The notes: generated by a model from the letters alone, not told the origin. Shown: positions 10,437 to 64,000, numbered from the stretch's first letter. The stretch is 64,000 nt of DNA from Tubulanus polymorphus (GCF_964204645.1 NC_134030.1:20544210-20608209), one strand, 5' to 3'. Made by a program: numbers and translations.

Positions 10437-11266
10437 GATTTCAGGAATTGAGCTACCGGACAGCCGAGTGTAACCCGATGGTTGTTTGGTCGCCCTTTTG
10501 TCGAACTTTGCGTTAAAATGTATCGAGGTAATGGTAAATGGAACGATGTTATATGCCATAATTTGAAACCAGGAAGAAAGACACTCTAAATATTTGGATG
10601 GATATATGAAAGCTGTGGGTACTGGAGTGTGTAATGGGTAGTGTAGTGTGATCTGTGTGCATTTTGGTGGCCAGCACACAGATCACATTGTTCATTGGGG
10701 TTTAGTCCAGGACTCGCGAGATTTTCAACAACACGGAAGTAACGTGTAATAAAGATGACTTGAATTGCATGACTACCTACCACCCCTCATTATTGTTGGA
10801 AAACTAAACGTTCCGCACTGACTAAAAATTAGTAATAACATTTTAGAAATGGCCGGAATTTTAACTTAGGTTATATCTCTTTTTTATTTTACAATTGCGA
10901 TTGGTATAATTTTTTTTTAAACGGCCGTTAAGGCTTCATGTTTCGTCTGCAATTCACTGCAAATAGTTACGCAACTACGCACATTTCAGTGTTTTTGGCA
11001 GCTGTACACTCAATCGGCACCGTTCGTGACTAGCTTCACTGCGGAATTATCATTAATTAACATCGCCATATCACATCATCAACTTATATTGTGCCTTAAA
11101 ACCCTAACAGCCGAAATAATTGAAATACACACACGATTTCTATCATTGAAAATTGAGAGAATGGCCGTGTTTGTGTTCTGCTGCTTCGCGTAAATCCCGC
11201 GGGGTGGCGCCACCGCGCGGAGTGGGGCCGATACGTCCAGCTATTTGTTCGAAGGATTGTCAATAG
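10437..11266 (+). pseudogene. Orphan inverted copy of lectin exon 4 (A type), with a stop codon and a TE insertion
   Basis: tttcag|GAT TTC AGG AAT TGA..: DFRN*ATGQPSVTRWLFGRPFVELCVKMYRGNGKWNDVICHNLKP[insert 10573-11240]AICSKDCQ*. No exons 1-3 were seen nearby. Confidence 0.85.
10573..11240. mobile_element. Unclassified ~660-bp TIR-less element inserted at CCAG (copy 1)
   Basis: Interrupts the orphan lectin exon and is flanked by CCAG...CCAG. Near-identical to 50499-51163. Confidence 0.85.
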
Positions 11267-35850: not shown

Positions 35851-38135
35851 CTATTGACAGTCCTTCGAACAAATAGCTCGTTTCGGACTCTGGCATATAA
35901 CATCGTTCCATTTACCATTACCTCGATACATTTCAACACAACGTTCGACAAAAGGACGACCATACAACCATCCGTTTACACTCGGTTGTCCGGAAGCCCA
36001 ATTCCTGAAATCCTGCAAACAGGTAATGAAACTATTTCCTTATGAATCAAACAAGTATAAGTTATATAGATTAATATCTAAGGATAAAACAAGGTCGGAT
36101 CGAGGATTCTATGAAGGGGTGGACCTTGATATTGGAATGGGCATTAACTTTGAAAAGGACAGATTTGGCAGGCTGGGGTGGGTTCTGATGGGTCTCACAC
36201 AGAAGATTTGAGAAATACAATCGTTGTTCTTGGCCTTGATAGGGTCTATTTGGATTTATTTTTAGTCTGCAAAAACCTTTTCCGGGCTTTTTGAAGGGCA
36301 CATTGAACTTTGAAGTGTACCCGGTCGACCCCCTCCGCCTCTGTATACGTCAAGATGTTTTCCTTTGAGTCAAAGAGCAGTTACAAGTACGCGTACCGGC
36401 CAGCCAGAACAAAACGCACCCTTACACACAGTTCAAGTAAAAATTCGATGTAGTCACGTGGGGAGTGACGATGAAATCCTCGAAACAACCTCGAATTTAC
36501 CGTAATGAGGTCAAATGATGAGCCCCGTTTCCAAATACCAAGCCAAACAGACGGCACGTCATCGGGTATTAGACCTAAAATGACGACAGTATTGTTTAAG
36601 TTAAAACATGATCGCCACACCTACATATAAAACAGCATATTCCATCACGTACATACTCTACATTATTTTCCTCCAAGCTATCGATTCTGGCCTGTCCCGA
36701 AGACGCACAATGTTGGCTAGGCGACAAATATCTAGGTGAAAACATGAAGCACTTCGTATTTCCAGCCGGGGTCCAACCGTCATCACAAACACACGCTGTA
36801 ACTATATATACATCCATACGACACAACAATTAGCGATAACTCAAACATCATCAGCAATCCAAAATTTCCCCCTCTTAATTTATAAAACGCACTGATCAAA
36901 ACACCTCTTTCTCTGTTCGAATTCTATACTATAATCACCATCATAAAATATATTTGCTCTTAATTTGTTTAGTTTGTAACGGTTTCCTCACACATATTAC
37001 TAACTATTTCTGGTTGAGTATCAAATCTCATTACTCGTCGTTTTGGTCTCTATATTTATCTCAGAATTCTATTATGAGATTAAGTGTATCAAATCAAGTG
37101 CATCAAATCAAATGTATCAAATCAAGTGTTACAAATCAAATGTATCAAATCAATTTGATTACTATTACGGTAAAGTCGAAACGTCGAATAGAATATTTTA
37201 AATCTTGAAATAGGGATTGGCCCGTTGTTCACTTGATTCGTAGATTTGTTTGGTTTTGTTTTGATTTGGTGAAGCTTACAAACCCACCGGTCGCTCCGCC
37301 AGGAACGAAACAGGGGTTTGATTTTTGAAATCGGAATTCGAAGTACAGATATAGTTGTGTGATCGGCGGTCCAAATTAAAGAATTTTTTGTTTAAATCGA
37401 AGTACATAATTGGGAAATTCGGTCCCAGTTCATTCAAACGATCTTCTAACCAGTCTGAACCGGCAAGCGACTGATTGGGGTCAAATAGGATATCAACGTA
37501 CTCTCTTTGTTTTAAGTGTGGGGTTTTATATCCGGTTCGATAGTAGAATATTAGCGTTATTTGTGTTTCTACTAGTTTACAATCAAAACCAAACCTCAAA
37601 CCGATCAGACAATGTAAGCCTAATTCGCCCGCTTTTTCGGTGGTGAATTCGGGTTCAAACATTGAATTACAACAAAATTGAACTCAAAATGTGTCATTGT
37701 TAGTTCAGTAATCCCCAGACCAGACAACTTGATATCTCAAATTTTAGTTTAGTAGTTATCACCTAAAGTCCAGCGGTCTAAACTGTTTAATATAATTTGA
37801 CATCGAAAATAGTAGTTCAAGCGGCAGTGAAATAGAGTATATATTTCGATGATTTTGGAAAACGTCAGTAATCGAGATGTTAAAAATAGACGAAAATATT
37901 CCCAAATAGTTGTCGTAGATCTGGAACCAATCGCCCATAGTTTCCAAATCAAAAGTAAAAATGCGTAAAATTCCTTACGCTTTTTTTTCACTTTCTCTTT
38001 GCTCCATGGAATACTTTTCAGGAAGTTTTCTAACATAAATGATGGATAGTAATATCAATAAATGACAATTATATTGGTATATTTACCTGCCGTTGTAGAA
38101 CAGACCAGGAACAGAGTCGATATCATCAGCTTCAT
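35851..38135 (-). pseudogene. C-type lectin copy 2 (A lineage), frameshifted
   Basis: Exons 38135-38087, 36795-36657, 36574-36501, 36012-35851. Exon 2 is 139 nt versus 144 nt in all paralogs (5-nt GCTCA deletion before the donor), giving a premature TGA in exon 3. The other exons are intact. Confidence 0.75.
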
Positions 38136-39272
38136 ATTCAAAGAGTCTACCTTTTTCTTATTGAATCTGAAACTGAAGGCATGTACATTTTTAGTAGCCG
38201 TTCTACTTGCTAAAAACAAAACATAGGTCCCTTATGAACTATGAATATTGAAATCATTTATTTCCCAGTATAATTTACTTACTCGTTCTATCAGCGAAAT
38301 TGATATGTAAAATGATTATTATTTAGTATCATATATACGGGCGTGTTGACGATTTTGCACAAAACAGTCGCGCTGAAAACAAACATTGATGAGGATATTC
38401 GGCACTTGATTTGAGTAAATAATATGTGGTAGTTTTCGGGGACAGGTTTAATCAATTATCGGTGGTTGAATGATTATTGTTTAGTGTCCTATATACGGGC
38501 GTGTTGACGATTTTGCATAAAACACGCGCGGTGAAAACACGCATTGGACGTGAGGCTTTTTCGACACTTGACTCGAGGACGCGGCCATTTTCAAGAACAG
38601 TTTTAATCAATAATTGGCTGTTAGCATACAGTCAGTTAGAACGGTTCAAAAGTGCCATTTCCACATAAATATATGGCATTCGTTGCATACGTGTATCTAG
38701 GTAGACGTTCTTCTTTCATGCAATGGGAATTCCATAAAAGAAAACGTTTTCGAAGAAGAAACTCTGTTTTTGTACTGGTAATTTTTACTAAAGAAATCGA
38801 CTTAAGACATTAATGATTCGTACCAAGCGCCGGTTATAATATACCCGCTACTGTGGCAAGTGAGGATCCACCAGGTGACGTCTGTCAGTTACTGTATTTC
38901 TTCTGCAGTTCAATTAAATCCACTTTTAAAACTGAATTGAAAGATTATTTTATTCTACGTAAGATTTCAGAGAACACGTGATGAGATTCGGCACCGATAC
39001 TGTGGCAAGCGAGGATCCACCAGGTGTCGGTAGTGGTTACTCAGTTATTGTACTTCAGTTACTCAGTTACTTCAGTTACTGTACTGTTCTTCTGCATTTC
39101 AGTTCAATTCGAATCGACTTTTCTCATAAGTAAATCATTCGTTTTCAGTAAAATCTATACCATGCACCGATTGAGAAAGGGAATCTTTTATCTATCCGAT
39201 AACTTGTTTGATAATTCTCGGATTTAGAAGCCTAACAACCAAGCCTTAACGTCATGTCATCTTTGTCATTTT

Positions 39273-39438
39273 GTATTGACAGACTATCTATCGAACAATA
39301 GCAGGCTTGTTACCCCGGCAAAACATCGTTTAAAAAACGAACAAAATATTTACCAGTTTTGATACTATTTCAAGGCAAGATTCTTCTGTTGCGGGCATCC
39401 CTGCACTCGTTTCTTGATCGACTCAATTCTGGTAATCC
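39273..39438 (-). pseudogene. Decayed B-type lectin exon 4 downstream of copy 3
   Basis: Homologous to 59231-59386 (DYQN*VDQETS..ESCLEI..). The acceptor AG is lost, and there is a stop codon and indels. Confidence 0.75.
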
Positions 39439-40331
39439 GTGTAACCAATAATGAACGGGCTCACGAGATTCTATCCGTCAGTGCATTATATCATGAAATA
39501 TGGCGGAATGGGGTTTTAGCTTCGCCTTATACTTTCATATTAATTGGTTGATTGGTGTCACGAATTTACAAATGTTCTCATCCGCGCCCCGCACCCACGT
39601 AGGAAAACCCGACAACGAGCTGAGAGCTTTGTAGAAATATCCTGCAATAATCGTCGGTTCAGAAGATTTTATGACTAAAGGCTTTAATTTAATACATATT
39701 CCTTAAGGTTTCATTTTATCATTTCCGTCGATGTGCTTCATGAAATTTGGACTGATTACCATTCACATATAGACGTCTCGTTCAAGGCGATCTCAATATT
39801 CAACACCATCGGGTAAATCTAAAAAGAATCTTGATAGCTTGTCTGATCGTAACCTTAGCGTCGTAAAGATATCCGGCCTGTGATGTATTGCTCGCAAATG
39901 TCACGATTTTCATTTGTAGATAAATAAAGTCGCAGGGAAATCTTTTTGAACGTTGCTTGGGTGGTTTTCTGACGGCTCGCAAAACGTAATAGACATTTTC
40001 TGAAACGTGTTTTTCATCAGCAATCTCTGAGCTCTTGCGACTATCGAGTAAAATTGCCGGTTCGAATCCCGTATAGTTAATGTACCAGTTTCAGGTTAGA
40101 ACGTAAGCGCGCTAGAAAATGCAAATTATGTCTAATCATCCGACTGTGCAAGAACGGAATAAATAACTGAGTGTTCGATTTTCAGAGAATTAATCGTCGA
40201 ACAACTTCAGAAGTCTATCATTGGTCATAAGACGACCTATAACCGCTACAGAATAGTTTTATTTTCGATACCGAACAAAATGTGAATTTGTGATAACATC
40301 GTAGTGAAGATGTTCATCATATCGTTCTCGT

Positions 40332-42984
40332 TCATTGACAGTCCTTCGAACAAATAGCTGGCAGGAAATTGTAGCATAGAACATCGTTCCACTCACCACT
40401 ACCTCCATACATTTCAACGCAATTTTCGTAAACAAAACGACTATTCATCCACCATCGGGTTCTACTCGGCTCTCCGTGAGCCCAATTCCTGAAATTCTAC
40501 AAACAGGTAATAGAATTACTTCCTTATTATTCAAACCGGTATAAGTTATATAGATTGATAAACAAGCACAAACCAAGGTCGGATCGAGGATTCTATGGAG
40601 GGTTGGAACTTGATATTGGAATGGGCACTCAGTTGGAAAAATGGCAGATTTGGCAAGAATGCCGGCACCAAGCCATTAATAGGAGTCATCACTAAATATC
40701 TCGATTTGTTCTATTAAGAAACGCAATCTTATTCTGATAAGTTGACATGCTGAACATGATAACAGAGATAAGAATATATCACTGTTAATTCGATAGAAGA
40801 CATAATGTGAGTTTTATTTAATCTTTGCATGTAGAGCTTAAGCCAAATAAATTTCAAATGTTAAAAAAAATAAAAGACATGAAATGTTTTATTGAAATAT
40901 TTGAAAACATGTATATGTAAGTTGTAGATCGCCGATAAAGTACTATTATCAATTTAATTATAAAATAAATTTATTCTGTTCCTGGGCCGCTGATGATATC
41001 ACATCTTAAGGACTTGAAAATCCATATACTAAACAAAACAAAAATAATGATGGACAACAAACCCAGTGAAAGTTTTTAAGTAGCCGAATAAACTGAGCAG
41101 TCACTTCGTCATTAGAATCAAAGACAATTTGTGTTCTCTCCACTGTATTTGCAGAACCTGGTTTACATTGTATGATCGAGCTTAAATCAAGCTTAATCAG
41201 CTTCTTTATCCGTCACACACAAATCGTCAGTAAATTCCAAGATTTCAAGACCGACTGGCGATAACAATAAGCCTCTGTAAGCGTCCGTTCGTTTTCTAAT
41301 CGTTTGTCTGTTATTAGAGGAAGAATATGTTGTAGAGCTATTCGAATATGCACAAGTCATACGTAAGTTAGTTTTAAGTCAAGTTAGTTTCCCGGATGAT
41401 ATGGTTCCCAGTTCAACATGTTTCATTCTAATAAATATTTCAGAGAATCGACACCGAATCATTAACAACCCGAGGTTTAAAGAGAACGCAGTTCTACAAG
41501 ACTCGAGAACAGATGTCAACATGACTTGAAGGACTGAACTACGGTTTTAGATTTAAAAATCGAGTCGCCTGTCTCGTTACCGGCAGGAGGCTTGTGTGAC
41601 AAAGTTTGTAAGGAAAATACTAATAATTACCATATAACAATGAATCAAATAATCTAGATGGGCAGTCGTTCTTTTTAAGTTGTAATTTTTAAAAGTGGGT
41701 CAAAGCACGCGTACAAACCGTCAGAACGAACGGGCGACAAGACATACCATGAACGTACACGAATGTTTCGTGATTTTGAATACGGATGAAGTCATTATGT
41801 AGAAGTAGATCGGGCTGATCGTGAGAATTATTGCTACAATGAAGAAATTACCGATTGAAAGTTGAACGTCGAATACCCGGGGCTGGCATAATCCCTGAAT
41901 CCCAGGTAGGCGGAATCCGCATAAGCAGGTATCAGACCTGAAAACGATAACAGTATTATATCAGTTCAATATCTCACCCCCCCCCCCCATAAAACACGGT
42001 ACATGACATATTTCGGCATACATACTCTCAGCCACGTTATTCTCTTCAACGCTATCTACCATGGCCAGTCTGGAAGCGATGCAATGTTGATCTGGTCGGA
42101 GATATAACGAAGAAAGCTTGAAGCATTTCGTGTTTCCGGCTTTTGTCCAACCGCCTTCGCAAACACACGCTGAAACTATATCCAACGATTATCAAATTCT
42201 ATCGGATCATTTGCATGCGGTCTACACGGGTTAATAAGCCTAATATGGAGCGATGTGGCCGAGTTGTTTGAGCGTTCGCTCTGGAAAGCCAGTGAAGTCA
42301 TGTGAAGTAGTGTCCATAGGCGATACACTTTTCCTCATTTCCTCTTTCCATCCAGGAGTGAATAGGTACCTGGCCTGATAGATGACTCCTGAGCGCCTAG
42401 TAGCTGATCGGATTTAACTTCTCCCCAGGGAGAGATGATTGATACACGGAATAGAGTTATAGGCTGACGGTAATAATGCTGGAAAGTTAAGCGCTCTGAG
42501 CAGCTCCGTTGGATTAAGTGCTTTACGAGACAAATATTTACTTTGGATAGCAATAATGCTAATACAAACGACAAATTATCTTTCATTCTACCGTTTTATT
42601 TCCCGTTAAGTCACATCCTTTTTCTATCATTCATATCATTTCTTTTTCTTTTTCTAGATTCGATTAATTAGCTTGATATTTGTGAAGTTTTGGTTCGGAA
42701 AAATGGACGATCTTAATAAATTTGAAACAGTCGCACAGCCTGAAACATTTGCTTTTTCTGCAAAGCTTACTGCACACAGTTTTTCATTAACTTTAAACCG
42801 GTGAATATTTTCTACAATGGAACAGGTGCTATACACTTTTCAAAATTAATTTATTTGATTCTAACTCATATTTACTATCCATAGTTTGCTTAGCTTTATT
42901 TATTTGTGGCAATTCATATTGATATATTATTTTACCTGCCGTTGTAGAACAGACCAATAACAGTGTTGATATTATCAGCTTCAT
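40332..42984 (-). CDS. Secreted C-type lectin, copy 3 (B-lineage exons 1-3 plus A-type exon 4)
   Basis: Exons 42984-42936, 42169-42026, 41937-41852 (SLIPAYADSAYLGFRDY..), 40496-40332 (NFRNWAHGEPSRTRWW..CVEMYGGSGEWNDVLC..AICSKDCQ*). Frame is intact. Confidence 0.87.
42246..42545 (+). mobile_element. tRNA-derived SINE in intron 1 of B-lineage lectins (also 50393-51350 split, 60312-60600)
   Basis: A-box-like tggccgagt head, ggcaagacacttatcctcattgcctctttccacccaggagtaaa body, and aagcgctctgagcag..agcgctt tail. Confidence 0.7.
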
Positions 42985-43318
42985 TTTCGACGAGTCAACT
43001 TCTTCTTTTATCTATAACACTGATAAGGTAAACAGATACGCGTTTTAACTGTTTATTGAAAGATTAAGCCTATTATGGGAAGTGCATGGTCCTTGCATAT
43101 TTGCTGAGTTGAAAATCAACCAGGGAATTATACACAAAGTTTCATTGGTCATATGCGCTTAATATATATCTACTTAATATGTTCTTTGTTTTTGTTTTTT
43201 CGTTCTAAATTGTTACGGTTCAGTCTAGAACTAACTTTTAACATCGTTAACGTTCATTTTCCGTTTCGTTCACGTTTACAGCGGAAATCAATTGGCGTTT
43301 AGGAACGAAATTCCAGTC

Positions 43319-43422
43319 GCGTGTACGGCGTGTACGGCGCGTACGGCGTCTACGGCGCGTACGGCGTGTACGGCGTGTACGGCGTGTACGGCGCGTACGG
43401 CGTGTACGGCGTGTACGGCGCG
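43319..43422. repeat. 9-bp repeat (gcgtgtacg)n
   Basis: About 11 units visible; absent from the duplicated segment at ~52272. Confidence 0.95.
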
Positions 43423-44897
43423 TTTCAATTGGAACGATAAACGACAACGCGATGCAATTATCATTTTGAAACGCCATAATTGATGACGTAGTGCACATGA
43501 ACTCACACAAAAACCCTCAACGCATACTATCCAAAAAACTTTATTGTGACGGATTTTACTGCGCCAAAATATAATTGAATTGATACACTTGATTTGATAC
43601 TTGACTTGATATTTGATTTGATGCACTCGATTTGATATTTGATAAACTCGATTTGCTATTTGATTTGATGCACTCAATTTGATATTTGATAAACTCGATT
43701 TGATATTTGACTTGATACACCTGATTCGATATTTGATTTGATACACTTGATTTGATGCCCGATTTGATGAATTTCAAAGTAAAAATACATGAATATATTA
43801 TATCAACACGGTAATCACCAGGATAGATCGTAATTTGATTTCCATTTCACTTATTGTACAAATCGTGTATTCGAATTTTTCCTAGGCCGTTTTGTAATTT
43901 CTGGACATTTCGACTAAGAACTCTATTTATAATCACTCTTCCCCGGCATATGATTTTACTTACCCGCTTCGTCAGCAGTTTCGTGATAAATGTTCAATTA
44001 TAATTCGGCCGGAATAATATTGAAATTGCATCGATTTTTTGCGAAAACACATGTTTTGACTGCAAATATGAATGAAACGTTTTAGCACTTAATTTGAATA
44101 AATATTCCCTAGGTGCGGTTGGGTGGATGACTGTTAAAATAATTGTTACATATGAAAGCCCTGAAGTATGGAAGCCCTAAACGACCGATTGCGAAATCAC
44201 CAGTTATGTTTTTTTACGAAATTCTGTTTGACGATATTACGAGTTACGATTTGGACGATTATCGATTGGCCACTACAACAGTTCGGTTGTTCAGAACTTC
44301 AACAGAGACATTTTAAAAAAACAAACTTATCATCCACGTTCTCATGTGTTCGGAACCTCACCTGAGACATTTCTAATCGAAAATGAACTACAACCACCAG
44401 ACATTAGACATTTTATCAGCACACTTCCAAAAACTGATCATCCACACTTCACATGTGTTCAGTGCATCACCTGAGACATTTCTAATTGAAAATGAACTAC
44501 AAACACCAGACATTAGACATTTTATCAGCACACTTTCAAAAACTGATCGTCCACACTTCACATGTGTTCAGAACTTCACCTGAGACATTTTTAAAATGAA
44601 AATTAACTGCAAGCACAGGAACAAAAATATGAAAGCCTCATATATTTTGCATGGAACATCTGTCCAGAATACAAACAATATTTCGAGTTTAATCAACTAT
44701 TGGCGGTTCATGAGTGGTCTATGGTCATGAATATACAGATATCGAAACCACATATCTTTTGCGAGAAATCAATAAACTATATATATATATATATATATCA
44801 AAGTTTATTGATTGGTTTTATTTTTCATACCGCACAAAATACATATAAGATAAGAGATATCGCAGTGAAGATGTTCATATCGTCCTCTCGTTCATTT

Positions 44898-46502
44898 CTA
44901 TTGACAGTCCTTCGAACAAATAGCTCGTTTCGGACTCTGGCATATAACATCGTTCCATTTACCACTACCTCGATACATTTCAACGCAACGTTCGAAAAAA
45001 CGAAGACCATACAACCATCCGACTCCACTCGGCTGTCCGGTAGCCCAATTCCTGAAATCCTGCAAACAGATACAAAAAACTTCCTTATGAATCAAACCAG
45101 TATAAGTTATATTAATATCTATGGATAAAACAAGGTCGGATCGAGGATTCTATGAGGGGATGGAATTTGATATTGGAATGGACATTAACTTCGAAAAGGA
45201 CCGATTTGGCAATGCGGGCTGCGAGCGAAGCATTGGGGTGGGTAATGCATCTCCCACGGATGATTAAAAATGGTCCATTTGGATTTATTGTTAGTCTTTT
45301 CTTAAATTTCCCAATGCAAAAAAATCTAATAACACATAAAAACCATCTTGTATACGTCAGGATGTTTCCTTTGTTTCAAAGAGCGGTCTAGCGCACGCGT
45401 GAAGGCCAGAACTAAAGGCAACATACACGCGCTTACGAGCAAAGCTGAGCTACTTAATTTTCCGCTAGATGGCGAACTAGTCGAAGGTTGCTGCTCTAAT
45501 GCATTATGGAATGCTTTAGAGCTGTCTTACAGTCGCTGAAATGCCCAAACACGGATAGTTGGCGAAAAAGATGTTTGAAAAATTTTCTTTTCTTTTGGAA
45601 AATCCCCCACATCTCGAGAAAATCAACTCTTTCGTTGGTGAATAAAAAATCATTTTTATTCACCAACGAAAGAGTTGATTGAAGCTACTTTGATATATAG
45701 AATCACGGTACATATAGGACAATGTTATTCGAGAGAATATTCCTAGAAACGACGAACTTACCGTAGTGAGGTCAAATGATGAGCCCCGTTTCCAAATACC
45801 AAGCCAAACAGACGAAACGTCATCGGGTATTAGACCTAAAATGACGACAGTATCGTTTAAGCTAAAACATGATCGCCACTCCTCTGCATAAAACAGCATA
45901 GTCCATCACGTACATACTCTGAGCTACGTTATTTTCCTCCAAGCTATCGATTCTGGCTAGTTTCGAAGACGAACAATGTTGGCTTTGCGGCGAAATTTCC
46001 GGAAAAAACTTTAAGCATTTCGTGTTTCCAGCCGGGGTCCAACCGTCATCACAAACACACGCTGTAACTATATATACATCCATACGACACAACGATTAGC
46101 GATGACTCAAACATCATCAGCAATCCAAAATTTCCCCCTCTTAATTTATAAAACGCACTGATCAAAACACCTCTTTCTCTGTTCGAATTCTATACAATAA
46201 TCACCATCATAAAAGACAATTGCTTTTAATTTGTTTAGTTTGTAACGGTTCCTTGCCGCCTAGTACTAACTATTCATAGCAGTCGTAGATCTGGATCCAA
46301 TCGACTTTCGTTTCTCAATCAGACAAAATCCATTAAATTCCACACACTTTTTTCGTTTAAGAGCTTTGCCCAATGAAATAGATTTCAGGAAGTTTTCTAA
46401 CATAAATGATGGATAGTAATATCAATAAGTGACAATTATATTGGTATACTTACCTGCCGTTGTAGAACAGACCAGGAACAGAGTCGATATCATCAGCTTC
46501 AT
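44898..46502 (-). CDS. Secreted C-type lectin, copy 4 (A lineage)
   Basis: Exons 46502-46454, 46061-45918, 45835-45762, 45059-44898 (DFRNWATGQPSGVGWLYG..CVEMYRGSGKWNDVICQSPKRAICSKDCQ*). Frame is intact. Confidence 0.88.
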
Positions 46503-47639
46503 ATTCGAAGAGTCTACCTCTTTCTTATTTGATCTGAAACTGAAGGCATGGACATTTTTAGTAGCCGTTCTACTTGCTAACAACAAAACATAGGTCCCTT
46601 ATGAACTATGAATATTGAAATCATTTATTTCCAGGTATAATTTACTTACTCGTTCTATCAGCGAAATTGATATGTAAAATGATTATTGTTTAGTATCATA
46701 TATACGGGCGTGTTGACGCTTTTGCACAAAACAGTCGCGCTGAAAACAAACATTGATGAGGATATTCAGCACTTGATTTGAGTAAATAATATGTGGTAGT
46801 TTTCGGGGACAGGTTTAATCAATTATCGGTGGTTGAATGATTATTGTTTAGTGTCCTATATAAGAGCGTGTTGACGATTTCGCATAAAATATGCGCAGTG
46901 AAAACACACATTGGCCGTCAGGCTTTTTCGACACTTGACTCGAGGACGCGGCCATTTTCAAGAACAGTTTAAATCAATAATTGGTTGTTTGCATACAGTC
47001 AGTTAGAACTGTTAAAAAGTGCCATTTCCACATAAATATATGGCATTCATTGCATACGTGTATCTAGGTAGACATTCTTCTTTCATGCAATGGGAATTCC
47101 ATAAAAGAAAACGTTTTCGAAGAAGAAACTCTGTTTTTGTACTGGTAATTTTTACTAAAGAAATCGACTTAAGACATTAATGATTCGTACCAAGCGCCGG
47201 TTATAATATACCCGCTACTGTGGCAAGTGAGGATCCACCAGGTGACGTCTGTCAGTTACTGTATTTCTTCTGCAGTTCAATTAAATCCACTTTTAAAACT
47301 GAATTGAAAGATTATTTTATTCTACGTAAGATTTCAGAGAACACGTGATGAGATTCGGCACCGATACTGTGGCAAGCGAGGATCCACCAGGTGTCGGTAG
47401 TAGTTACTCAGTTATTGTACTTCAGTTACTCAGTTACTTCAGTTACTGTACTGTTCTTCTGCATTTCAATTCAATTCGAATCGACTTTTCTCATAAGTAA
47501 ATCATTCGTTTTCAGTAAAATCTATACCATGCACCGATTGAGAAAGGGAATCTTTTATCTATCCGATAACTTGTTTGATAATTCTCGGATTTAGAAGCCT
47601 AAAAACCAAGCCTTAACGTCATGTCATCTTTGTCATTTT

Positions 47640-47806
47640 GTATTGACAGACTATCTATCGAACAATAGCCGGCTTGTTACCCCGGCAAAACATCGTTTAA
47701 AAAACGAACAGAATATTTACCAGTTTTGATACTATTTCAAGGCAAGATTCTTCTGTTGCGGGCATCCCTGCACTCGTTTCTTGATCGACTCAATTCTGGT
47801 AATCCG
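47640..47806 (-). pseudogene. Decayed B-type lectin exon 4 downstream of copy 5
   Basis: Near-identical to 39273-39438. Confidence 0.75.
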
Positions 47807-48663
47807 TGTAACCAATAATGAACGGGCTCACGAGATTCTATCCGTCAGTTCATTATATCATGAAATATGGCGGAACGGGGTATTAGCTTCGCCTTATACT
47901 TTCATATTAATTGGTTGATCGGTGTCACGAATTTTCAATGCTCTCATCCGCAACGAGCTGAGAGCTTTGTAGAAATATCCAGCATCGGTTCAGACGATTT
48001 TATGTCTAAAGGCTTTGATTTAATACATATTCCTTAAGGTTTCATTTTATCATTTCCGTCGATGTGCTTCATGAAATTTGGACTGATTACCATTCACATA
48101 TAGACGTCTCGTTCAAGGCGATCTCAATATTCAACACCATCGGGTAAATCTAAAAAGAATCTTCATAACTTGTCTGATCGTAACCTTAGCGTCGTAAAGA
48201 TATCCGGCCTGTGATGTATTGCTCGCAAATGTCACGATTTTCATTTGTAGATAAATAAAGTCGCAGGGAAATCTTTTTGAACGTTGCTTGGGTGGTTTTC
48301 TGACGGCTCGCAAAACGTAATAGACATTTTCTGAAACGTGTTTTTCATCAGCAATCTCTGAGCTCTTGCGACTATCGAGTAAAATTGCCGGTTCGAATCC
48401 CTTATAGTTAATGTACCAGTTTCAGGTTAGAACGTAAGCGCGCTAGAAAATGCAAATTATGTCTTATCATCCGACTGTGCAAGAACGGAATAAATAACTG
48501 AGTGTTCGATTTTCAGAGAATTAATCGTCGAACAACTTCAGAAGTCTATCATTGGTCATAAGACGACCTATAACCGCTACAGAATAGTTTTATTTTCGAT
48601 ACCGAACAAAAATGTGAATTTGTGATAATATCGTAGTGAAGATGTTCATCATATCGTTCTCGT

Positions 48664-51600
48664 TCATTGACAGTCCTTCGAACAAATAGCTGGCCGGAAA
48701 TTGTAGCACAGAACATCGTTCCACTTACCACTACCTCCATACATTTCAACGCATTTTTCGTAAACAAAAAGACTATTTATCGACCATTTGGTTCTACTCG
48801 GCTGTCCGGTAGCCCAATTCCTGAAATTCTGCAGACAGGCAATAGAATAACTTCCTTATTAATCAAACCGGTATAAGTTATATAGATTGATATACAAGCT
48901 ACAACCAAGGTCGGATCGAGGATTCTTTTGAGGGTTGGAACTAGAACTTGATATTGGAATGGGCACTAATTTGGAAAAATGGCAGATTTGGCAAGAATGC
49001 CGGCACCAAGCCATTAATAGGAGTCATCACTAAATATCTCGATTTGTTCTATTAAGAAACTCAATCTCATTCTGAGACGTGCTGAACATGATAACAGAGA
49101 TAAGAATATATCACTGTTAATTCGATAGAAGACATAATGTGAGTTTTATTTAATCTTTGCATGTAGAGCTTAAGCCAAATAAATTTCAAATGTTAGAAAA
49201 AAAAATAAAAGACATAAAACGTTTTATTGAAATATTTGAAAACATGTATATGTAAGTTGTAGATCGCCGATGAAGTACTATTATCAATAAATTAATAATT
49301 TGATTTATTCCGCTCCTGGGCCGCTGTTGATATAAGTTAAGTTAGTTTCCGACTCAGTTCCACAGTTGCGAGTTAGAGTTAACTCTGAGTTAAAGTTAGT
49401 TCATTTTCAATGAGTTAACTCAGAGTTAAATCTTAACTGGGAACTGTGGAACTGGACCCCGGATGATGGGGTTTTGAAATAACTGTTCGAAACTAAACGT
49501 TTCTACAAATCTACTGTGGGTTTTTTTATTTCTAACACTGAGATTCATATCAGTTCACTATAGTCAACATGTTTCATTCTAATCAATATTTCAGAGAATC
49601 GGCATCGAATCATTAAAAACCCGAGGGTTAAAGAGAACGCAGTTCTACAAGACTCGAGAACAGATGTCAACATGACTTGAAGGACTGAACTACGGTTTTA
49701 GATTTAAAAATCGAGTCGCCTGTCTCGTTACCGGCAGGAGGTTTGTGTGGCGAGTTTGTAAGGAAAATACTAATAATTACCATATAACAATGAATCAAAT
49801 AATCTAGATGGGCATAGTCGTTCTTTTTAAGTTGTAAATTTTCAAAGTGGGTCAAAGCACGCGTACAAATCGTCAGAACGAACGGGCGACAAGACATACC
49901 ATGAACGTACACGAATGTTTCGTGATTTTGAATACGGATGAAGTCATTATGTAGAAGTAGATCTGGCTGATCGTGAGAATTATTGCTACAATGAAGAAAT
50001 TACCGATTGAAAGTTGAACGTCGAATACCCGGGGCTGGCATAATCCCTGAATCCGAGGTAGGCGGAATCCGCATGAACCATCAGACCTGAAAACGATAAC
50101 AGTATTATATCAGTTCAATAACTCTCCCGATAAAACACGCACGGCACATGGCATATTTCAGCATACATACTCTGAGCCACATTATTCTCTTCAACGCTAT
50201 CTACCATGGCCAGTCTGGAAAACATGCAATGTTGATCTTGCCGGCCATATTCCATAAAAAGCTTGAAGCATTTTGAGTTTCCGGCTTTCGTCCAACCGGC
50301 TTCACAAACACACGCTGAAACTATATCCAACTATTATCAAATTCTATCAGATCATTTGCATGCGGTTCTACACGGTCTATAAGCCTATACTATGGAGCGA
50401 TGTGGCCGAGTTGTTTGAGCGTTCGCTCTGGAAGCCGGGTCATGTGAAGTAGTGTCCCATAGGCGATACACTTATCCTCATTTCCTCTCTCCACCCAGGA
50501 AGAAAGACACTAAATATTTGGATGGATATATGAAAGCTGTGGGTACTGGAGTGTGTAATGGGTAGTGTAGTGTGATCTGTGTGCATTTGTGACCAGCACA
50601 CAGATCACATTGTTCATTGGGGTTTGGTCCAGGACTCACGAGATTTTCAACAACACGGAAGTAACGTGTAATAAATGATGACTTGAATTGCATGACTACC
50701 TACCACCCGTCATTATTGTTGGAAAACTAAACGTTCCGCACTGACTAAAAATTAGTAATAACATTGTAGAAATGGCCAGAATTTTAACTTAGGTTCTATC
50801 TCATTTTTATTTTACAATTGCGATTGGTATAATTTTTTTTTAAACGTCCGTTAAGGCTTCATGTTTCGTCTGTTCTTCACTGCAAATAGTTACGCAACTA
50901 CGCACATTTCAGTGTTTTTGGCAGCTGTACACTCAATCGGCACCGTTCGTGACTACCTTCACTGCGGAATTATCATTAATTAACATCGCCATATCACATC
51001 ATCAACTTATATTGTGCCTTAAAACCCTAACAGCCGAAATAATTGAAATGCACACACGATTTCTATCATTGAAAATTGAGAGAGTGGCCGTGTTTGTGTT
51101 CTGCTGCTTCGCGTAAATCCCGCGCGGTTGCGCAACCGCGCGGAGTGGGGCCGATACGTCCAGGAGTAAATAGGTACCTGGTCTGATAGATGTCTCCCGA
51201 GCGTCTAGCAGCTGCTCGGATGTTACCTCTCCCCAGGGAGAGATGACTGATACATGGAATGGAGTTATAGGCTGGGAATAACAATGCTGGAAAGTTAGGC
51301 GCTCTGAGCAGCTTCGCTGGATTTAGCGCTTTATAAGTCAAAATGTTTACTTAGGCTAACAATAATGCTAACACATATTAAACGACAATCTTTGTCTTTC
51401 AATCTACTGTTTTATTTCCCGTTAATTCATGTCCTTTCTTCTACAATTCATACTATTTATTTTTCTTTTTACAGATTCGATAAATTAGCTTAATATTTGT
51501 GAACATGGGTCGGAAAAATTTACGATAAATTCAAAAACAGTCGCACAGCCTGAAACATTTGCTTTTTCTGCAAAGCTTACTGCACACAGTTTTTCATTAA

Positions 51601-51797
51601 CTTTGAGGGACTGGTGAACCTTTTCTACAATGGAACAGGCGCTTTACACTTTTCAAAATTGATTTATTCGATTCTAACTCATATTTACTATCCATAGTTT
51701 GCTTAGCTTTATTCATTTGTGGCAATTCATATTGATATATTATTTTACCTGCCGTTGTAGAACAGACCAATAACAGAGTTGATATTATCAGCATCAT
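48664..51797 (-). CDS. Secreted C-type lectin, copy 5 (B-lineage exons 1-3 plus A-type exon 4)
   Basis: Exons 51797-51749, 50314-50171, 50086-50004, 48828-48664 (NFRNWATGQPSRTKWS..GKWNDVLC..). Frame is intact. Confidence 0.87.
49353..49460. mobile_element. Short palindromic MITE (relatives at ~56535-56672 and ~13190-13238)
   Basis: cagttccacagtt..aactgtggaactg inverted termini; absent from the duplicated segment at ~41390. Confidence 0.6.
50499..51163. mobile_element. Unclassified ~660-bp TIR-less element inserted at CCAG (copy 2)
   Basis: Interrupts the SINE in intron 1 of lectin copy 5. Empty sites are visible at ~42352 and ~60409. Confidence 0.85.
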
Positions 51798-51934
51798 TTT
51801 CGACGAGTCAACTTCTTCTTTTATCTATAACACTGATAACGTATACAGATATTGAAAGATTTATTAAGCCTATTATGGGAAGTGCATGGTCCTTGCATAT
51901 TTGCTGAGTTGAGAATCAACCAGGGAATTACACA

Positions 51935-52090
51935 AATTAAAAGAATTTAAAAACAAGAATTTATTTATTAAATCTAAAATATTTAAAAGACACGACGTTT
52001 CGATCTCACCCTAGAGATCATCGTCAGGTGTGTTATAGTGGGATTTTATCTTATTATCCGTTCACCACGTTTGAGTGTGGTTATCGTTCA
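51935..52090 (-). mobile_element. Penelope-like element with intact hammerhead (51989-52032)
   Basis: Reverse complement reads acacCTGACGAtgatctctagggtgagatcGAAAcGTCgtgt. Absent from the duplicated segment at ~43130. Confidence 0.8.
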
Positions 52091-53344
52091 ATTACATGAA
52101 GTTTCATTGGTCATATGCGCTTAATATATATCTACTTAATATGTTCTTTGTTTTTGTTTTTTCGTTCTAAATTGTTATGGTTCAGTCTAGAACTAACTTT
52201 TAACATCGTTAACGTTCATTTTCCGTTTCGTCCACGTTTACAGCGGAAATCAATTGGCGTTTAGGAACGAAATTGACTTGATGCACTCGATTTGATATCT
52301 AATTTGATACACTTGATTTGATATTTGATTCGACAAAATACAAATACATGAACATATTACAATAACACGGTAATTACCAGGATAGATCATAATTTGATTT
52401 CCATTTCACATTGTACAAATCGTGTATTCGAATTTTTCCTAGGCTGTTTTGTTATTTCTGGACATTTCGACTAAAAACTCTATTTATAATCGCTCTTCCC
52501 CGGCATATAATTTTACTTACCCGCTCCGTCAGCAGTTTCGTGATGAATGTTCAATTATAATTCGGCCGGAACAATATTGAAATTGCATCGATTTCTCGCG
52601 AAAACACATGTTTTGACTGCAAATATGAATGAAACGTTTTAGCACTTAATTTGAATAAATATTCCCTAGGCGCGGTTGGGTGGATGACTGTTAAAATAAT
52701 TGTTACGTATGAAAGCCCTGAAGTATGGAAGCCCTAAACGACCGATTACGAAATCACCAGTTATGTTCTACGAATTCTATGTTTGACGATATTAAGATTT
52801 ACGATTTGGACGTTTAACGATTGGACACTACACAACAGTTCGGTTAAGTTTATCACGAGAGGTCAAGGTTGTTGTCCAATGACGTCAATGCATAGTGTGA
52901 ATGAACGTTGCTTTCAAACGCCATGCTGGGCCAAATTCGGCTATCTGAGTTAGTCGACTATAGTCGAACTAGTAAGTGAAAGCGAAAAGCCATCAAATCT
53001 CTTTGTCTTTTTAAATGTTCAGTGCTTCATCTGGGATATTTCGGATTGAAAATGAACCGCGAACTCCAGACATTAGACATTTCATCATCAGACTTGTGTG
53101 TTCAGAATTTCACCCGGGACATTTTCAAATGAAAATTAACTGCAAACGCAGGAATAAAAAAACAATATATAAAAGTGTCACATATTTTGCATGGAACATC
53201 TGTCCTGAATACAAACAGGTTGTCGAGTTTCAATCAACTATTGCTGGTTTATGAGTGGTCAATATGTTTATGAGTATAGATATGTCGAAACCAAATATCT
53301 TTTGCAAGAAATCAATAAACCTCGTTAATGATAGTGATGCCTAC

Positions 53345-59230: not shown

Positions 59231-61030
59231 TTATTGACAGTTCTTCGAACAAATAGCCGGCTTATAATCCCAGCAATTTACATCGTTCCATTTACCAGAC
59301 GTCTGATAGATTTCAAGGCAAGGTTCTTTGTCTGGAGGGTCTCCGCCGACATCGCTTGGTTCGTTATTGGCCCAATTGTGGTATCCCTGAAACCAGTAAT
59401 GAACGGGACTTGAATGAAAGAATCAAATCATAATACATTACAAACTACACAGTTGTTTAATGGAGGTCGCTTTTACGGACTGGTATTAATTCAAGCACTG
59501 TGGTTAGGCCGGCCTAGCTCGGGTCATTAACAACCCGAGGGTAAAAGATAACACAACTCAGCCCCAAGAACATGTCAAGATATCACCCATTGTGTTATTG
59601 GCTTCGAGGACTGCATAACTACAATTTTAGATTTTGAAAATCGAGTCCCCCGTTTCGTTTGGCAGGTGCTTGTAAGAAAAAAACACCGACAATAGGCATA
59701 TAACAATGAATCAAATAATCTAGATGGGCAAGGCTTCATTTTTAGTTGTAAATTTTCAAAGTGGGTCAAAGCACGCGTAAAAACCGTCAGAAAGAACTGG
59801 CAAAAAGACACACCATGAACGTACAAAAATATTTTGTGACTTTTTATACGCATGAAGTCATTATCTAAGACTACGTAGGTCTGGCTGAGAACTATCGCTA
59901 CAATTACGAAATTACCGATGGAAATGTGAACTTCGAAAATCCCATCTGATCAGGATCCGTAAACCCGAGATAAGCGGAATGCACAGAAGACGGTATTAGA
60001 CCTGAAAATGATAACAGAATTGTATCAGTTCAACTAATATCACCCCCCCCCCCTCTCCCCGATAAAACACGGCATATTTCAGCATACATACTCTGAGCCA
60101 CATTATTCTCTTCAACGCTCTCTACCATGGCCAGTCTGGATGAGCTGCAATGTTGGTGTTGTGAGAGAGATCCCGAAGAAAATATGAAGCATTTCGTGTT
60201 TCCGGCTTTTGTCCAACCGGCTTCGCAAACACACGCTGAAACTATATCCAACGAATCATCAAATTCTATCAGATCATTTGCATGCGGTCTATACGGGTTG
60301 ATAAGCCTACTATGGAGCGATGTGGCCGAGTCGCTTGAGCAGAAGTCGGGTCGACATGTGAAGTTGTAGTGTTTAGGCAAGACACTTATCCTCATTGCCT
60401 CTTTCCACCCAGGAGTAAACAGGTACCTGGCCTGATAGATGACTCATGAGCGCTTAGTAGCTGGTCGGATTTTACTTCTCTACAGGGAGAGATGACTGAT
60501 ATACGGAATGAGTTTTTAGGCTGGGGACGATAATGCTAGAAAGTTAAGCGCTCTGAGCAGCTACGCTGGATTTAGCGCTTCATTAGACAAATGTTTATAA
60601 TGGCTAACAATAATGCTAACACATATCAAACGTTTTCAATCTACCGTTTTATTTCCCGTTAATTCCTCTCTCTATCATTTCTATTATTTCTTTTTCTTTT
60701 TTTAGATATTTGTGAAACTGTTTCGATTCGGAAATATTCATGATCTGAATAAATTCGACCACAGTTGGAAACATTTTGCTTTTCTGCAAAGCTTACTGGA
60801 CTGTGGATACAGTTTTTCATTTTAGTATAAAGTACTCTGGTGAACATTTTCTACAATGGAACAGGCGCTATACAAATTTCGAGATTGAATTATTGATTTA
60901 TTAGATTCTAACTCATATTTATTCCCCTTAGTTTGCTTAGCTTTATTCATTTGTGACAATTTATATTGGTATATTATTTACCTGCCGTTGTAGAACAGAT
61001 CAGAAACAAAGTCGATATCATCAGCTTCAT
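59231..61030 (-). CDS. Secreted C-type lectin, copy 7 (pure B lineage)
   Basis: Exons 61030-60982, 60235-60092, 60001-59916, 59386-59231 (GYHNWANNEPSDVGGDPPDKEPCLEIYQTSGKWNDVNCWDYKPAICSKNCQ*). Frame is intact. Confidence 0.87.
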
Positions 61031-62680: not shown

Positions 62681-64000
62681 CGACCAGAATCCGGTCGTAC
62701 CAATCACAGCGCTTGTAACAAATGACATGAGGCTTCTGTTGGTTATCCCGTTAAATGGACCAATCAGCGAACGTTTTACCGAACAAGGAAGTATTTCGCA
62801 AATCGATATATGTCGTCATGCGCAACTGCGCCAGTAATGAAATCACGCTTCGTGGGGCCAGGGAGCTGGTGGAAGCGAGTTCGGGAGTGATACCGGACCC
62901 CTGGCAAGGGAGGATGGGTTTTACTACTGATCGTCCACACTTCACATGTGTTCAGTGCTTCACGAGAGACATTTCTAATTGAAAATGAACTACAAAAACC
63001 AATTCTATCAGCAAAATTACAAAACTGATCGTCTAAGCTTCACACTTAATGACAACATAACTTCACCTACAGATATGTTTAAATGAAAATGAACAGCAAA
63101 CACCAAACATTCGACATTTCATCAGCAAAATTTCAAACAACACATGATATGTGTTCAATACTTTGCCTACTGACATTTTCAATTGAAAACGAACTGCAAA
63201 CACCAGACCAATAACAATATGAAAGCCTCATATAATTGCATGGAACATCTGTCCAGAATACAAACAATATTTCGAGTTTAATTAACTATATTTGCGGTTC
63301 ATGAGTGTTCTATGGACACGAATATACACATATCTAAACCACATATATTTTGCGAGAAATCAATAAACCGCAATAATAATTGGAATTACGGATGAACACT
63401 CCTATTGTAAAACTGATAATCGTGGATTTATTCTTTATCTATTTTATTTAGAAGGGACCTCACAAAACTACGGGCCGTTTCGCATAAGCAATCCGTAGGG
63501 AACAGGGAATAGCTGTATACATTCTCCTTTTTATTACCATGAGTTCACAGAAATGGATAGATTAAGATTATCATCGGGTAAGATGACAACCGACTTCAAT
63601 GACATTGATATCAACAAATACAAGCAAATGAGAAAAATGTTACGAAGAGCGAAACATATCCCGGAATCTAACCACACGCCCGACCGCTAGATCCGTTGTG
63701 TAACGTCGCCTTAGTAATTTCGATCCTATATAGAAGACACGTGTCGGCGCATTTTCGTGAAACGACATGTAACATTGCCGAAAGTCTTACCAGTTTTTTT
63801 TTTTGTTTCCAGAAACGTGTTTCCGTAGTGGTCGAATTTGAGTTGTGACGATGTCTACCATGACGAGAATTACCCGCTTACAATAAAAATCCTGGCTGTA
63901 AGAACATACATATTTAATATGACCGTACGACCGACACTATTGAAAACTATGACGAAAAATGTCCGTAAGCCTTTAGAAATAAAACAGAAACCCGTTAGAA

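Follow-up and report, generated by a model that had tools for sequence, protein, structure and literature searches.

Patchwork divergence between neighboring C-type lectin genes of the ribbon worm Tubulanus polymorphus

A 64,000-nucleotide stretch of the Tubulanus polymorphus genome (GCF_964204645.1 NC_134030.1:20544210-20608209; here called the window, with positions counted from its first letter) contains a minus-strand tandem array of seven small secreted C-type lectin genes, lectins 1 to 7 (L1 to L7), each built of four exons. We compared L3 and L5, which lie in two copies (units A and B) of a 6.4-kb duplicated unit, and found that their divergence is a mosaic: long, nearly identical tracts alternate with strongly diverged patches, and different segments of the same gene have different genealogies. 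The coding scaffold of the lectin domain is constrained, and in the companion pair L2/L4 divergence peaks on a variable loop. We conclude that L3 and L5 are probably true tandem paralogs that gene conversion has turned into a mosaic, with their loops kept different within a constrained scaffold. Because the diverged patches ignore exon boundaries, exons taken together do not outpace introns in this pair, and its dN/dS is about 0.9.

Divergence along the duplicated unit

The two copies of the unit differ by 315 mismatches over 5485 aligned nucleotides, and these are distributed very unevenly (chi-square over 200-nt bins, p=1e-26). A two-state hidden Markov model (HMM) assigned a divergence of 2.2% to most of the length and of 15.7% to eleven patches (Table 1). 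A first-pass annotation of this DNA had described L3 and L5 as recently duplicated, which fits most of the unit but not the patches. CpG sites account for 26/115 differences in the largest diverged block and for 48/200 elsewhere; hypermutability at CpG sites or through transitions was ruled out as the source of the block, both shares being the same as in the remainder. A faster-evolving dispersed repeat in intron 1 was ruled out as well, since divergence is similar inside and outside the repeat.

Summed over the gene, L3 and L5 differ at 37/441 exon nucleotides (8.4%) and at 138/1771 alignable intron nucleotides (7.8%; Fisher p=0.69). Codon counts by the Nei-Gojobori method (NG86), summed exon by exon after two split codons identical in both copies had been dropped, gave dN 0.088, dS 0.101, and dN/dS 0.88 (p=0.83). 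The first-pass annotation had argued that exons diverge faster than introns here, as in venom toxins and immune receptors under positive selection. Its counts are accurate: intron piece 41701-41850 differs from its duplicate at 49853-50002 at exactly two positions (41812 and 41718), the 13 compared codons of exon 2 carry 12 substitutions that make 7 replacements and 1 synonymous change, and in exon 4, 12 nucleotide differences give 9 replacements, the EPS/QPS change among them (12/165, 7.3%; NG86 10.5 nonsynonymous versus 1.5 synonymous, pN/pS 1.6). The generalization does not follow from them. The counted intron piece sits in the intron block that has diverged least, and the appearance of fast exons comes from setting the most similar intron piece against those exon pieces that differ most. 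Exon-wide positive selection of the toxin kind is not supported for L3/L5, in which dN/dS does not exceed 1 and exon divergence equals intron divergence, the two outcomes that had been named in advance as speaking against it.

Broken down by segment, the differences follow position along the gene. Exon 1 has 2/49 differences and exon 2 has 19/144 (13.2%; NG86 5 synonymous and 14 nonsynonymous differences); the neighboring noncoding segments reach 62/472 (13.1%) in the middle of intron 1, 17/163 (10.4%) in its 3' part, and 14/84 (16.7%) in intron 2, so that exon 2 is indistinguishable from its flanking introns (p=0.89). The last 200 nt of intron 3 show 13/200 differences (6.5%), a level that exon 4, directly downstream, matches with its 7.3%. 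Synonymous divergence in exon 2 is also high (0.17) and is therefore not a product of selection on the protein; high synonymous divergence in the peaks fits old sequence that was spared homogenization, not a burst of replacements alone. The exons contain one indel, in frame, where 4.7 would be expected at the intron rate (p=0.05).

Separate segments of one gene have separate genealogies. With L7, the third gene of this type, as the third sequence, intron 1 is close to a three-way split (L3-L5 11.2%, L3-L7 15.2%, L5-L7 16.5%), and within the largest diverged block the three genes are almost equidistant. In the 5' part of intron 3, the corresponding distances are 2.4%, 21.0%, and 21.3%. The site patterns of these two segments differ at p=1e-11 (Fisher), and in a tree built from exon 2 only, L3 pairs with L7 rather than with L5. 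We read this as a true difference in genealogy because a local shift in mutation rate or constraint would push the L3-L5 and L3-L7 distances the same way. Patchy identity together with discordant genealogies is what interlocus gene conversion or unequal exchange leaves behind in tandem arrays. At a deeper level of the family, exon 3 of L3 (41852-41937) and of L7 (59916-59999) are 32.5% diverged (pS 0.52), compared with 21% in the adjoining intron (p=0.03); introns therefore seem to have been homogenized at that level too.

Whole-genome DNA searches with the exon-2 and exon-4 blocks of both copies found no donor in the assembly closer than the partner copy, which was the best match at 86% and 94%, respectively; L7 came next (81 to 85%), and other paralogs reached at most 79%. 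When the exon-4 patch was polarized with seven other paralogs, private changes appeared on both lineages, which rules out one-sided conversion of exon 4 from L2, L4, or L6. Localized gene conversion, which the first-pass annotation had put forward as the alternative to selection, thus proves the better frame given the patchiness and the discordant introns, but the donor outside the window that it invoked was not found in the assembly.

The companion pair L2/L4 provides a sharper peak. Its exons differ by 8.0% and its alignable introns by 9.4%, and its most diverged intron blocks reach about 15%, the same maximum as in L3/L5. This shared ceiling fits a single old duplication of a two-gene unit, most of which was afterwards homogenized between the copies. 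Over the variable loop of exon 2, divergence in L2/L4 rises to 29% (Table 1), compared with 19/346 (5.5%) in the flanks of the peak (Fisher p=1e-7). No extant donor was found for this exon-2 tract, which is at most 72% identical to every other paralog. Directly ahead of the exon-2 donor site, 5 nt present in all other paralogs are missing from L2 (36654-36665), which shifts the frame into exon 3; the gene may be spliced at a different site or may have become a pseudogene.

Variable loops, scaffold, and sugar motif

Exon 4 matched Pfam family PF00059 (Lectin_C) at profile positions 57-107 in both L3 (E=3.3e-5, 25.0 bits) and L5 (E=2.1e-5, 25.6 bits), against a curated cut-off of 22.6 bits, and phmmer aligned it to the solved lectin domains of MRC2, conglutinin, CD23, and collectin-11. 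Exon 2 alone and exon 3 alone gave no match in PDB or Pfam. The cysteines of exons 2 and 4 are conserved across about 20 paralogs, and WND and Glu-x-Cys are kept in all of them. Within this frame two stretches vary. HVR-a covers codons 16-34 of exon 2 and is variable in all ~20 paralogs; judged by the usual layout of lectin domains, it falls between strand one and helix one. HVR-b is a 14-codon loop between the EPS motif and Glu-x-Cys, whose Glu is the next calcium-binding one; of the 9 replacements in exon 4 that separate L3 from L5, it takes 5, and its length (12 to 14 residues) and sequence vary across the family. Going by the standard description of mannose-binding protein, it presumably borders the calcium and sugar site.

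Loop and scaffold codons evolve under different regimes. Summed over L3/L5 and L2/L4, the proportions of changed nonsynonymous (pN) and synonymous (pS) sites are 0.023 and 0.226 in the exon-2 scaffold outside HVR-a (p=0.0005) and 0.289 and 0.167 in HVR-a. In the L3/L5 loop, 11/45 nonsynonymous sites have changed (pN 0.244), about twice the level of the most diverged local intron (93/719, 0.129; p=0.04); in L2/L4, 15/45 have changed. Each paralog has its own HVR-a without a close relative, and the remainder of exon 2 is 94 to 100% identical within each gene type. GY94 omega fits on fixed exon trees of 15 to 18 paralogs, with p values against omega = 1, gave 2.10 for HVR-b (p=0.016), 1.44 for HVR-a (p=0.12), 0.42 for the exon 2 scaffold (p=0.0003), and 0.68 for the exon 4 scaffold (p=0.03). 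Compensated frameshifts were rejected as a source of the loop differences: L3/L5 contain none, and the evidence in L2/L4 is borderline (p=0.07). A narrower idea of selection thus survives: two fast loops in a scaffold under purifying selection.

The residue at the sugar-specificity position also differs. A GAG/CAG codon (40470-40472) separates EPS in L3 from QPS in L5; within the window, EPS is found in L3, L6, and L7 and QPS in L1, L2, L4, and L5, and more distant lectin clusters carry the canonical EPN. The Ser of EPS/QPS stands where the canonical motifs EPN and QPD have the calcium-binding Asn/Asp. In exon 4, L5 and L4 are identical along 32 nt that include the T and Q codons. Given this identity and the scatter of E and Q across the array, recurrent mutation and short conversion are not separable as origins of the switch. 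In crayfish, the duplicated lectins PcLec-EPS and PcLec-QPS reportedly bind sugars and prefer mannose and galactose, respectively (PMC9638144); by analogy, a difference in sugar specificity between L3 and L5 is plausible.

Competing explanations

One explanation for the near identity of units A and B could be that they are two haplotypes of one locus placed in tandem by the assembly. We examined four public runs that contain the stretch, from one study and two samples, all as assembled DNA-like contigs. In run X1 (sample S1), contigs specific to A have a word depth of 39 to 40 and stretches identical in A and B one of 64 to 72, which suits an artefact as well as a duplication, since these depths come without a single-copy baseline and do not separate alleles from paralogs. 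Against an artefact, the window has no N bases anywhere and hence none between the units, which differ by a 660-bp element, a nonhomologous 230- to 410-nt intron chunk, and blocks at 16%; L6 and L7 moreover repeat the two-gene design in an older unit, the third of the array. Exon 4 occurs in sample S1 as at least three sequence types, namely L5 types, reference L3 at a depth of 27, and a variant L3 at a depth of 16. The variant is the only L3 type in sample S2, where L3-type contigs have about one-third the depth of shared contigs (14.6 versus 42), an A:B dose near 1:2 that is impossible for two alleles of one locus, contig depth being a weak measure of dose. The haplotype worry raised by the first-pass annotation is thus not supported, although the test is a weak one, and we regard an artefact as very improbable. 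The variant, known from assembled contigs, carries 40377C, 40399G, and 40422T on the plus strand; the letters at 40377 and 40422 are L5's derived ones and do not form one continuous tract. It hints that exchange between L3 and L5 is still going on. A contig of run X2 that is L5-like at the start of exon 3 and L3-like in exon 2 crosses a 36-nt stretch identical in A and B, and we rejected it as an assembly chimera rather than a recombinant.

Three further accounts accept the duplication. If the unit had been duplicated recently (~2%) and one copy had then taken up diverged tracts of a third paralog located outside the window, block-like divergence with sharp edges and the 32-nt identity of L5 and L4 would be explained; such import is nevertheless improbable, because the genome searches returned nothing closer than the partner copy, the exon-4 changes are private to both lineages instead of showing one donor's states, and L2/L4 have the same maximum divergence, which one old duplication would predict. 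Recent duplication followed by positive selection on whole exons, in the style of venom toxins, draws on the excess of replacements in exon 4, on the E/Q change, and on the sugar preferences reported for the crayfish lectins (PMC9638144). We give it hardly any credence: exons equal introns, introns 1 and 2 have diverged as much as exon 2, exon-2 synonymous divergence is high, and genealogies change within one gene. A purely neutral mosaic is the more serious competitor. It posits the same patchy conversion, with loops that are merely unconstrained surface segments in unconverted patches and no selection for difference. The pair's dN/dS of 0.88, the insignificant loop omega of the two close pairs, the nonsignificant co-location of loops and high patches (p=0.085), and the occurrence of high patches in noncoding DNA all suit it, and a modeling preprint (10.1101/2025.10.29.685298) reports that variation in conversion rate within genes yields mosaic tandem paralogs. 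We nonetheless consider it rather unlikely, for nonsynonymous divergence in the loops is roughly double the highest neutral level nearby, the L2/L4 tract lies exactly on the loop at 29% when that pair's most diverged intron blocks reach ~15%, HVR-b omega is 2.1, and HVR-a is private to every paralog in an otherwise well-conserved exon 2.

We therefore favor a conversion mosaic with loops kept different. The 6.4-kb unit would have been made mostly alike in recent times (~2%), likely by interlocus gene conversion or unequal exchange, and a handful of patches would keep much older sequence (~12 to 16%), crossing exon boundaries and in some cases purely intergenic. Two regimes appear to act within the exons: purifying selection on the scaffold, with HVR-a and HVR-b taking nearly all replacements. 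Selection for different loops, hence for different binding specificity, including the E/Q switch, would protect the peaks from overwriting. By extension, the array might be a diversified recognition repertoire in which conversion evens out scaffold, introns, and regulatory DNA and selection keeps the two loops and the E/Q residue different in each copy, a reading we advance tentatively and hold to be somewhat doubtful. Under this repertoire reading, the unique, donorless exon-2 cassettes would reflect sustained diversifying selection; a focal mutational process is less likely.

Several observations weigh against the favored account. Loop omega in the two close pairs is 1.7 and not significantly above 1 (p=0.30); the loop partitions of the family omega tests were picked post hoc, after their variability had been seen, and those fits assume single exon trees, an assumption that recombination violates. 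With L3/L5 alone, both loops fall inside high patches in 8.5% of circular shifts (p=0.085), and 49.5% of coding bases lie in high patches versus 30% expected (p=0.26). L2 is possibly broken by its 5-nt exon-2 deletion, which weakens a selective reading of the L2/L4 peak. No conversion tract has an identified donor, and an old remnant is not separable from an import out of a lost donor. Splice models and expression are predicted only, the four public runs being DNA-like contigs and none of them RNA; no intron-skipping joints were seen in the runs that hold the stretch.

Array layout and comparison with known systems

About a dozen further lectin paralogs lie elsewhere on the same chromosome, which holds about 20 in all, and one lies on another chromosome. 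Every gene follows one plan: a signal peptide, an N-terminal piece starting CVC..GW, a short middle exon, and a C-terminal exon with E/QPS...WND...CSKDCQ. Two gene types alternate along the array, L2/L4/L6 (plus L1) and L3/L5/L7. L3 and L5 have intact frames and GT/AG at all junctions of both copies; these conserved frames and junctions, together with purifying selection on scaffold codons, support the predicted gene models.

TABLE 1 Genes, exons, loops, and divergence blocks in the window
Feature	Position	Strand	Remarks
Lectin 1 (L1)	32.3-33.9 kb	minus	
Lectin 2 (L2)	35.9-38.1 kb	minus	
Lectin 3 (L3)	40.3-43.0 kb	minus	
Lectin 4 (L4)	44.9-46.5 kb	minus	
Lectin 5 (L5)	48.7-51.8 kb	minus	
Lectin 6 (L6)	54.6-56.9 kb	minus	
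Lectin 7 (L7)	59.2-61.0 kb (59234..61030)	minus	third L3/L5-type member, served as outgroup
L3 exon 1	42936-42984	minus	signal peptide, phase 1 end; ATG, hydrophobic leader, GT donor
L3 exon 2	42026-42169	minus	N-terminal part of lectin domain; AG acceptor, GT donor, frame
L3 exon 3	41852-41937	minus	
L3 exon 4	40332-40496	minus	C-terminal half of lectin domain, EPS...WND; with stop codon
L5 exon 1	51749-51797	minus	
L5 exon 2	50171-50314	minus	
L5 exon 3	50004-50086	minus	one in-frame 3-nt indel versus L3 exon 3
L5 exon 4	48664-48828	minus	QPS...WND
Duplicated unit A	37906..44288	minus	L2 exon 1, intergenic DNA, whole L3 gene; self-BLAST, MAFFT pair alignment
Duplicated unit B	46276..52845	minus	L4 exon 1, intergenic DNA, whole L5 gene; self-BLAST, MAFFT pair alignment
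HVR-a core, 13 codons	L3 42073..42111; L5 50218-50256	minus	12 differences in 39 nt
HVR-b	L3 40422..40463; L5 48754-48795	minus	
L2/L4 divergence peak on HVR-a	L2 36692..36760; L4 45958-46026	minus	exon-2 codons 12-34; 20/69 (29%)
Largest high-divergence block	41967..42849	minus	~880 nt, ~14-16%; most of intron 1, exon 2, intron 2; near-unbroken in HMM
Second high patch	40429..40598	minus	11%; last 102 nt of intron 3 and first 68 nt of exon 4; HMM
Purely noncoding high patches	43823-43714, 43066-43024, 38555-38494		HMM
Intron 3, 5' part	41413..41851	minus	12/437 = 2.7%; least diverged intron block; includes 41701-41850
Intron 3, middle	L3 41000..41412; L5 49334-49565	minus	nonhomologous between copies, ~50% identity, many gaps
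Mobile element, ~660 bp	50500..51159	unassigned	inside L5 intron 1, no counterpart in L3; insertion gap in pair alignment
Dispersed repeat, ~300 bp	42246..42538		intron 1 of L3, L5, and L7; dozens of genomic copies on many chromosomes, 75-89% identity

A 109-bp minisatellite lies at each boundary of the two-gene units (44323-44616, 53016-53320, and 62926-63368); the unequal exchanges that built the array may have taken place there. Segments 38708-39459 and 47074-47826, which lie downstream of exon 4 in L3 and L5, are 71 to 78% homologous to the exon-4 region of L7, with a decayed exon remnant near 39333-39422 in the segment beyond L3; L3 and L5 therefore look like L7-type exons 1 to 3 joined to an exon 4 of the L2/L4/L6 type. 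A second copy of the 660-bp mobile element, 96.6% identical to the first, is found at 10569-11240, where it splits a lectin exon-4 remnant with an in-frame stop (10437-11263, plus strand). A similar exon-4 remnant lies beyond the window (locus L040, C6:20507461-20510589). At 6866-7748 the window holds a long short-period tandem repeat array, with self-matches at offsets of 20 nt and multiples, that is locally GC-rich.

Other paralogs also occur in duplicated DNA. Segments C6:19596279-19609188 and C6:19630557-19643466 form a segmental duplication about 34 kb apart with two lectin paralogs, whose protein sequences for exon 2 and exon 4 do not differ between copies. Near-identical paralogs make up an inverted pair at C6:18040375-18044912 (loci L068/L082/L038) and C6:18236994-18241530 (loci L036/L067/L081); both have a 4-nt deletion inside the exon-2 variable stretch, and in one of them an upstream 1-nt insertion restores the frame and gives a new peptide without the conserved Cys.

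To our knowledge, there are almost no functional data on nemertean lectins. Accelerated protein evolution with conserved introns is known in venom and immune proteins, such as snake venom PLA2, C-type lectin-like proteins, and conotoxins. The ribbon-worm genes share with those families small, secreted, cysteine-framed products, tandem arrays, hypervariable surface segments, and a family loop omega of 1.4 to 2.1. Unlike in those families, L3/L5 exons do not outpace introns, and the mature protein has a dN/dS of 0.88. The array is thus not a clean invertebrate example of toxin-like exon acceleration; it is a compact case of concerted evolution with islands of divergence in ribbon-worm lectins. 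It also carries a caution: when an intron piece is picked by hand, setting it against an exon of the same tandem paralogs can give a false look of positive selection. Candidates for specificity differences between neighboring lectins are the two defined loops and the E/Q switch.

PcLec-EPS and PcLec-QPS of the crayfish (PMC9638144) are likewise duplicated single-domain C-type lectins in which the first motif residue distinguishes EPS from QPS. They differ from L3/L5 in phylum and gene structure and in that the crayfish pair reportedly diverges mainly in one exon; the ribbon-worm genes are known by sequence. The HMA4 genes of Arabidopsis halleri (bioRxiv 10.1101/2025.10.29.685298) resemble L3/L5 as young tandem copies with a patchwork of homogenized and diverged segments within genes, and, according to the same preprint, mosaic divergence can also arise without selection. 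HMA4 is a dosage-selected metal pump, unlike a lectin family with hypervariable loops.

The closest parallel is the divergence peak known from gene duplicates that undergo interlocus gene conversion, in the model of Teshima and Innan and in exon 5 of the primate red and green opsins (PMC3924837). In those opsins, introns are more alike than the exon with the functionally different residues. As there, tandem paralogs in the array are alike over most of their length and carry narrow diverged islands, and the exon-2 peak of L2/L4 (29% versus 5.5%) has the form of an opsin peak. Unlike opsin peaks, the main island of L3/L5 is about 880 nt long and mostly intron, other islands are noncoding, and the loops are known from sequence in one species. 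We conclude that the array is a further instance of this known pattern, divergence peaks under gene conversion.

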